Assembly: GCA_964057225.1 (NCBI GenBank) | Contig: OZ059898.1 | Location: forward strand, 13,392,001 to 13,456,000 | Reading direction: 5' to 3' | From: Auanema rhodensis | Taxonomy: Eukaryota; Animalia; Nematoda | DNA: 64,000 bases | Part shown: piece by piece, positions 22,021-23,406 of the stretch | How the letters are laid out: every line of letters starts with the position of its first letter | How positions within the stretch are numbered: the first letter of the stretch is position 1 | Notes under the pieces: model-generated | Seen by the model: only the letters and a program-made list of their open reading frames with translations | The model's database searches: none | Told to the model about the DNA's origin: nothing | Program-made: the position numbers and the translations under genes

Positions 22021-23406
22021 TTAGTTGTTGCCATCTCCGGGCTCTCCACCGTCTTGGTCGTCGGCAGCGGCATCGGAGGTCCACAATGTCAAGTTGTCCC
22101 TGAGGAGCTGCATGATAAGAGTGGAATCCTTGTAAGAATCCTCGTTGAGGGTATCGAGCTCAGCAATAGCATCATCGAAAGCCTGGAAGAGATTGGATTA
22201 GAATAGTATTCCGAATTTCCGAGGTCCACAATATGGGTACCTGCTTCGCAAGCTGGCAAGCCCTGTCAGGACTGGAATCAACTTCGTAAAAGAATACGGA
22301 ATAGTTGAGAGCCAGTCCTAACCTGACTGGGTGTTTTACACTCAGATGAACTTTAGCCAAATCCCAAGATTCTATGTAAGCGGCTTGCGCATGCTCGGCA
22401 AAAGCTGTAAAAGAAAAAAAAGTAACTCGCCTGCTTAGCCAATTGGCATGCCTTGTCTGGAGCATTGAGAATTTCGTAGTAGAACACGGAGAAGTTCAAA
22501 GCGAGACCAAGACGGATAGGGTGAGTAGGCTGCATCTTGTCCTTGGCGATGTCAAAGGCCTCCTGGTATGACTGCTGCGACTTCTCGACAACCGCTACAA
22601 TCATTAGAGTCAAGACGGTAACCAAGGACAGTGCTCAACCTAGTGACAACCCCATTCGTCCGGGTATCAAAATTTGGACTTCATTCTCATGTATTTAAAA
22701 ACACGAACAAAATTTATGAGAAGGTTGTCACTGGTGTTAGAGCACACTTAGGTTACGTATAGAAAGAAAAAAATAAGTAAAGTATTTAAAACTTACAGCT
22801 TCTGTCATCTCCAGAGGCAACCTCGGCGAGGTATCTGTAGTAATCTCCCTTCATCTTAAGATAGAAGACCTTGGATTCTGGGTTTCCGGCCTTAGGGATG
22901 AGGTACTTGTCAAGGAGATTCTGAAATTTATCATTTACAGTTGACCACAAATGTTCGATTTTAAGAGCGCCTGTCACTGCTAAGATGCAGCAAGACACAT
23001 GTCGCTAGGGATCAATAAACTCCAAATGACCAATAGTCGCAAAGAAAGGTCAAAAACTTACAAGAACATCCTGGCAGATGTCGCGGAGCTCGTTCTCAAC
23101 CTTCTCTCTGTATTCCTTAGCCATCTGTTGCTTCTTCTCGGATCCTTCGGTCTTTTGCTCGATGGAAGAGATTACTCTCCAGCTAGATCGTCTGGCTCCG
23201 ACGACGTTCTTGTAGGCAACGGAGAGAAGATTACGCTCCTCGTTGGAGAGTTCAGCTCCAAGCTCGGTGACCTTCTTCATGGACTGAGCCATATCGTCAT
23301 ATCTTTCAGCCTGAAATAAACAAAATAAATAAAAACAACCGATAAAACAAAGTACCTGTTCGGCAAGCTTGGCTCTCTGCACGAGCTCGTCCTTGTTGTC
23401 AGTCAT
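22021..23406 (-). CDS. ftt-2: 14-3-3 zeta-like protein with a duplicated exon pair
   Basis: [17 protein letters not shown]|[53 protein letters not shown]...[13 protein letters not shown]...[40 protein letters not shown] at 22021-22023. Confidence 0.97.
22241..22404 (-). CDS. 14-3-3 alternative exon B (164 nt, divergent)
   Basis: TTTTACAG|..[54 protein letters not shown]|GTACCC. Open, with the same phases as exon A. Confidence 0.85.
22431..22594 (-). CDS. 14-3-3 alternative exon A (164 nt, canonical) with a GC donor
   Basis: TTGTAG|..[54 protein letters not shown]|GCGAGT. Confidence 0.92.
22618..22756 (-). other. Long intronic RNA stem-loop upstream of the 14-3-3 duplicated exons
   Basis: On the minus strand GTAACC..GTGCTCTAACACCAGTGACAACC pairs with GGTTGTCACTAGGTTGAGCAC..GGTTAC. 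Inner stems TTCTCAT/ATGAGAA and GTCC/GGAC. Confidence 0.75.

Follow-up and report, generated by a model that had tools for sequence, protein, structure and literature searches.

In the 64,000-nucleotide stretch of Auanema rhodensis DNA that was analysed (the window), we found a 14-3-3 gene of the nematode ftt-2 type whose fourth coding exon probably underwent an ancient tandem duplication, the copies being used as a mutually exclusive pair in which exon 4A would yield the ubiquitous isoform and exon 4B a minor one (we place this reading at about 0.8). Public protein databases already contain the nematode B isoform, and the pair is real but not new; for the Auanema genome it is an expected conserved feature, not a discovery. 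On this reading, a single gene would supply nematodes of clades III, IV and V with two versions of an ultra-conserved hub protein, and Plectus has an intermediate form.

The gene lies on the minus strand, its coding span running from the ATG at 23406 to the stop codon at 22021, and it is the sole 14-3-3 locus found in the A. rhodensis genome. Exon 1 (23356-23406, 17 codons) is followed by a 45-nt intron and by exon 2 (23062-23310, 83 codons; Pfam PF00244 positions 8-92, E=1.8e-33), the join 23355/23309 being present in RNA-like contigs, as is the join 22920/23062 between exons 2 and 3. Exon 3 (22797-22920, 124 nt; Pfam positions 93-132) ends in phase 1 with the donor GTaagt. The major alternative, exon 4A (22431-22594, 164 nt, acceptor ttgtAG, donor GCgagt), is separated by a 26-nt spacer (22405-22430), which contains the A donor GCGAGT together with the U-rich tract and AG of B, from the minor alternative, exon 4B (22241-22404, 164 nt, that is, 54 codons plus two leading bases, acceptor ttttacAG, donor GTaccc). 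A 58-nt intron (22183-22240) on which no RNA contig was placed leads from 4B to the coding part of exon 5 (22021-22182, 53 codons plus TAA), and the 3' UTR extends past 21801, with contigs continuous from 22180 to 21801 and beyond the examined stretch. Exons 2, 3, 4A, 4B and 5 each scored above 33.2 bits against PF00244 and together covered profile positions 8-223, and the best solved-structure matches were 14-3-3 chains. We searched the whole 181-Mb assembly with exon B, exon 2 and PF00244, and the results showed that only this 14-3-3 locus matched, a count that is a lower bound; three 14-3-3 genes have been reported in nematodes such as Brugia, versus the single locus found here (PMC11732158). 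Since the whole-assembly searches matched this locus alone, an origin of exon B as a copy from another gene was ruled out.

Comparison of the two copies showed that both enter in phase 1 and exit in phase 0, and that each has its own splice sites. They share 30 of 52 aligned residues (58%; 30/54 overall; BLASTP E=1e-24), and each exceeds the Pfam 14-3-3 cut-off on identical profile positions, 135-188. The original prediction, which had described two 164-nt exons 26 nt apart with the same phases and 30 of 54 amino acids in common, was exact in its coordinates and counts. It had also stated that B keeps the groove motif HP.RLGLALN.SVF.YE and rewrites the preceding helix, and the exon alignment bore this out: the motif is retained in B, and the differences fall mostly in the helix before it and the loop after it. 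At the protein level, exon 4A does not differ from the A exon of distant nematodes. The splice signals differ in strength, 4B having a near-ideal, U-rich acceptor (ttttttttcttttacAG) and a GT donor, and 4A a weaker acceptor and a GC donor. The two are tandem-duplicated homologous exons, equal in length and phases and each bounded by splice sites.

We then searched other assemblies by words with the open frame of exon B, mapping the DNA exon by exon (tblastn), and found many short open frames with a B-type exon, two of which read through A, a short spacer and B. The original prediction had suggested looking for exon B across nematodes, and the search succeeded: seven other nematode contigs held A followed by B with intact AG/GT sites (L009/L010, filarial; L011; L012-14; L015/16, strongylid-like; L017, Enterobius-like; L018; and L021, Pristionchus-like), and 17 distinct B-type exons were counted. 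The Enterobius-, strongylid- and Pristionchus-like labels reflect identity of the B exon to named proteins; the filarial contig came from a run of the PMC8116671 study and has the same B exon as Dirofilaria. The A-B spacers in the seven contigs measure 24, 24, 25, 32, 33, 42 and 64 nt. A search of named proteins, with natural proteins as queries and the B part as the scored region, found public proteins with B between exon 3 and exon 5 in Ascaris suum, Parascaris, Dirofilaria immitis, Onchocerca ochengi, Loa loa, Brugia malayi, Necator americanus, Heterorhabditis, Strongyloides ratti, Rhabditophanes and Caenorhabditis angaria. Entries carrying B are named '14-3-3 zeta' in Ascaris suum (W6E939), Dirofilaria immitis (W6E957), Strongyloides ratti (W6EAA6), Heterorhabditis (W6EKZ0) and Caenorhabditis angaria (W6E8Z3), '14-3-3 zeta isoform 2' in Necator americanus (A0A059U5T4) and '14-3-3-like protein 2' in Brugia and Loa, and the Bm4259 isoforms belong to the same group. 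A full B-type protein is encoded, uninterrupted by introns, on a 1510-nt environmental contig with an A-run at its end, which represents either a message or the retrocopy of one. In Plectus sambesii, the second exon copy is intermediate between A and B. In the library searched, we found no paper describing mutually exclusive exons in nematode 14-3-3, and one may exist beyond it.

The B isoforms of other nematodes thus have an orthologous exon, position, phase and B signature in common with Auanema B, and the spacer between A and B is very short wherever DNA was available, as it is in Auanema. Three features set Auanema apart. Its B exon is the most diverged of the set, being 62-74% identical to the others, with Thr163 replaced by Lys; the donor of its A exon is GC, unlike all other nematode A exons compared; and B is the minor form in Auanema, whereas for several parasites the database entry is the B form. 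Not all of the public B-isoform entries need be cDNAs; some may be predictions. The Pristionchus pacificus UniProt model W6EKZ3 begins exon B at a non-AG site (L021:1876-1899), which implies that at least some of the entries are predictions; on the same contig, a canonical ttgcAG lies six bases further and would give a 158-nt exon B, as in the Pristionchus mayeri model.

The reading of the two copies as a mutually exclusive pair, already put forward in the original prediction, is supported by their splice sites, phase, frame stops and conservation in many nematodes. Two features of the locus would enforce it. The first is the spacer: its 26 nt contain both the A donor and the B acceptor, which would not be usable on the same molecule. 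Because this spacer is shorter than the smallest intron seen to be spliced in the gene (45 nt), the A donor and the B acceptor should exclude each other, a steric argument that relies on a general minimum intron size. The second feature is the 164-nt length of each exon, by which the frame would be lost on double inclusion or on skipping. When B was translated in the frame left by A, a stop was reached after 10 codons, and when exon 5 was translated in the frame left by exon 3, a stop was reached at the third codon; because both exons are 164 nt long, a transcript with both or with neither loses the frame and stops early. Besides the 26 nt of Auanema, the spacer is 24-33 nt in five other species and 42-64 nt in two, so that steric exclusion cannot be the whole story everywhere, since the filarial spacer is 64 nt long; with spacers of 42 and 64 nt, frame loss plus decay must be the back-stop. 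An A-only message was found in Auanema, and B-only proteins and the intron-less B contig in other nematodes.

Mutually exclusive splicing by steric hindrance is known from exons 2 and 3 of alpha-tropomyosin, in which the upstream donor and the downstream acceptor region are too close for joint use, as would be the case in nematode 14-3-3. The difference is that the whole spacer is only 24-33 nt in most of the nematode species, which would make the nematode pair a clean natural case of exclusivity by crowding. GC donors linked to alternative splicing occur in C. elegans, and in Auanema the upstream exon likewise has a weak GC donor, although among the nematodes compared GC occurs in Auanema alone. 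We also considered RNA pairing as a selector between the two exons. A repeat search found that the exon 3 donor (22793-22804, minus strand) can pair over 12-13 bp with the exon 4B acceptor (22399-22410), and this duplex, of -16.7 kcal/mol, was reached by 0 of 300 shuffles and would loop out 4A. However, in five other nematode species the counterpart duplex, tested at one site pair, gave nothing above shuffled controls. A conserved RNA pairing as the selector was therefore rejected, the strong duplex occurring in Auanema alone (0/5 other species), and at the one site pair compared the nematodes do not show the docking-site/selector type of pairing that characterizes fly 14-3-3 zeta and Dscam.

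To follow the two exons in RNA, we searched sequencing runs with exon B alone and found four runs of one study that contained all sampled words, the contigs of which were placed on 21801-23500. The spliced contigs and the zero cover of introns indicate that all four runs are RNA. The results showed that the main message joins exon 3, exon 4A and exon 5 in the four runs: the join 22594/22797 between exons 3 and 4A was found in 4/4 runs, and a 987-nt contig of run X3 joins exons 5, 4A, 3 and 2 and skips B. At the joint between 4A and exon 5, five letters are ambiguous, allowing six placements, and because GC..AG is the only recognised splice-site pair among them, the GC donor of 4A is used; this intron is of the GC-AG type (donor 22429-22430, minus strand), with its use confirmed by the RNA contigs. 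The GC donor is specific to this lineage, the corresponding donor being GT in 7/7 other nematode contigs compared. Exon B appeared in 4/4 runs as a separate minor contig (22240-22406 in X1-X3 and 22240-22404 in X4), which consists of the exon plus at most two flanking bases and matches the genome at 99% identity or more; neither the spacer past 22406 nor the 58-nt intron has any cover. Word depth was 35-50 for the B contig against 1,500-5,500 for the main contigs, a rough hint that B amounts to about 1-2% of A, because the data are assembled contigs rather than reads and contig word depth is a poor measure of abundance. No contig holding both A and B was seen in the four runs, and none of their contigs contained an exon 3-B or B-exon 5 junction. 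The evidence for transcripts containing B is the separate B contig in every RNA-like run. These results indicate that B is present in processed RNA and is bounded at the predicted splice sites.

The shape of the B contigs bears on two other explanations. B might be used mainly in a different transcript, trans-spliced at the B acceptor or retaining neighbouring sequence, rather than as a clean substitute for 4A. This would fit the B contigs, which carry no letters of exon 3 or exon 5, and the B contigs of X1-X3, which start with the genomic AG: exon 3 ends in ..GCT and would not supply an AG, so that such a start is compatible with a branching of the unspliced form from some other AG-ending sequence and not with exon 3. 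That reasoning, however, depends on how contigs are assembled and not on reads, and the X4 contig begins precisely at the first base of B. In a transcript that began at B, moreover, the first in-frame start codon would be the Met of LIMQLL in exon 5, and other nematodes have B cleanly placed between exons 3 and 5. We consider this explanation very unlikely. That the similarity is due to chance or to an assembly artefact, B not being an exon at all, has a negligible probability: we found no support for it, and the BLASTP match between the copies, the score of B above the Pfam cut-off, the RNA-like contigs at 99% identity or more and the orthologous B exons in many species all stand against it.

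The low depth and the missing B junctions would also suit B being a relic in Auanema, that is, an ancestral pair that is functional elsewhere and is represented here by low-level splicing noise without a useful protein. The question turns on selection. Synonymous sites were saturated in all species pairs (pS 0.56-1.08), and pN was 0-0.08 for A and 0.10-0.26 for B (pS for B 0.70-1.04). Low pN against saturated pS indicates purifying selection on both copies, and B evolves about ten times faster than A, yet is clearly constrained. The nearest relative found, by synonymous distance, is the Pristionchus-like contig (pS 0.70 for B), and since pS is at least 0.56 even there, every relative found was too distant for a dN/dS estimate on the window branch. 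The terminal branch of Auanema B is the longest in the exon tree (0.89 versus a median of 0.11), its pN to other B exons (0.18-0.26) lies at the top of the range, and some of its helix F residues are unusual, such as ESW for EA[LF]; together with the loss of Thr163, these features speak for a relic, and constraint on B may have been relaxed in the Auanema lineage. On the other hand, of the 23 positions at which the other 16 B exons do not vary, Auanema B retains 22, Thr163 being the one lost, despite the synonymous saturation. Its 54 codons are open, both splice sites are intact with the acceptor still near-ideal, and the RNA contigs end at the B splice sites with the flanking introns uncovered. 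A relic is unlikely on balance, and we retain the mutually exclusive pair as the preferred reading. The original prediction had called the second exon highly divergent and its rewritten helix unusual for such a conserved protein, which did not hold for nematodes: B is the standard B-type exon of the phylum, somewhat faster-evolving in Auanema.

Arthropods duplicate the same exon, as the original prediction had mentioned for insects. We found the duplication in ticks, crustaceans and a mite, where some gene models are read-through or contain both copies. In the tick Dermacentor silvarum, two 164-nt copies with the same phases as the nematode pair lie 70 nt apart; they differ at only 3 of 54 residues but at many synonymous sites, and none of the arthropod copies carries the nematode B signature. 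The exon cluster of Drosophila 14-3-3 zeta (leonardo) is a textbook case, described as mutually exclusive (PMC3923563, PMC6071210). It comprises three exons, reportedly governed by competing RNA pairings with a downstream docking site (PMC6071210), whereas the nematode cluster comprises two exons with no conserved pairing found and a spacer that is mostly too short for an intron. In the exon tree (54 columns), the nematode B exons formed one weakly supported group (80/27), and the arthropod copies fell with the A-like exons. Forcing nematode B and arthropod copy 2 into one clade cost 7.4 log-likelihood units (AU p=0.08, from the 54-column alignment). As to whether the likeness to insects is convergence or deep conservation, the tree gave no link between B and the arthropod copies; these comparisons suggest that separate nematode and arthropod duplications are the simpler reading, and a common origin is disfavoured but was not rejected by the AU test.

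To describe what the exon swap would change in the protein, we numbered the residues by alignment to human 14-3-3 zeta, residue i of the exon being zeta residue i+140, so that the exon corresponds to residues 141-194. We take this segment to include the greater part of helix F and to run through helix G into the first part of helix H. At positions 142, 145, 150, 159, 161, 166, 182, 183, 184 and 187, A and B have no residue in common, and at residues 174 and 178 Phe and Tyr are usually swapped between the two, with the groove motif kept. The 4B isoform would keep the groove-lining motif and have replaced residues in the F-G and G-H loops, over most of helix F and at a few positions of helix G. 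Position 184 is Ser/Thr-Pro in 17/17 B exons and Ala-Pro in all A exons, and is, in the sequences compared, the most consistent protein difference between A and B.

In mammalian 14-3-3 zeta, Ser184 lies at the surface next to the groove, and its phosphorylation by JNK releases Bad and FOXO3a (PMC2171419). Because B has Ser/Thr-Pro and A has Ala-Pro at this JNK site, we propose that B is the kinase-regulable form: B may be a version with a different outer surface that can be switched by a proline-directed kinase, and A a constitutive version. The idea extrapolates from the mammalian work, and the constancy of Ser/Thr-Pro versus Ala-Pro makes it a testable one about the purpose of the second form. 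According to a work in the reference list of PMC3493385, FTT-2 regulates DAF-16 in C. elegans. If the idea is true, an animal with one 14-3-3 gene could release clients such as DAF-16/FOXO in a stress-dependent manner from one isoform only. The fullest version, in which the choice between A and B is a choice between a kinase-insensitive 14-3-3 and one switchable by a JNK-type kinase, and in which the pair perhaps goes back to a single duplication common with arthropods and maintained, together with a spacer too small for splicing, over more than half a billion years, is speculative and seems doubtful to us.

The exon pair is also a useful check on annotation, as many public models of nematodes, and also of ticks and crustaceans, wrongly include both exons. 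Among others, we found gene models wrongly holding both exons in Gongylonema, Toxocara, Ascaris lumbricoides, Acanthocheilonema, Dracunculus, Haemonchus placei, hookworms, Acrobeloides and Mesorhabditis, and the Dermacentor silvarum model '14-3-3 protein homolog 2' (L020:9422-9819) holds both copies. In the Brugia and Wuchereria models (P0242, P0243 and P0245), it is the A exon that is a diverged copy (VVARSEQSYREAFDIANDTMHPT...NASEKACRLAKQ) and B that is standard, the reverse of Auanema. On one environmental nematode contig (L012:1220-1519), exon 4A is split by an extra intron after ..THPIR and 4B is unsplit. At the 5' end of the Auanema gene (23419-23423), one X4 contig runs upstream of 23423 with 15 letters that differ from the genome, and one X3 contig folds back on itself nearby (23262/23419, opposite strands).
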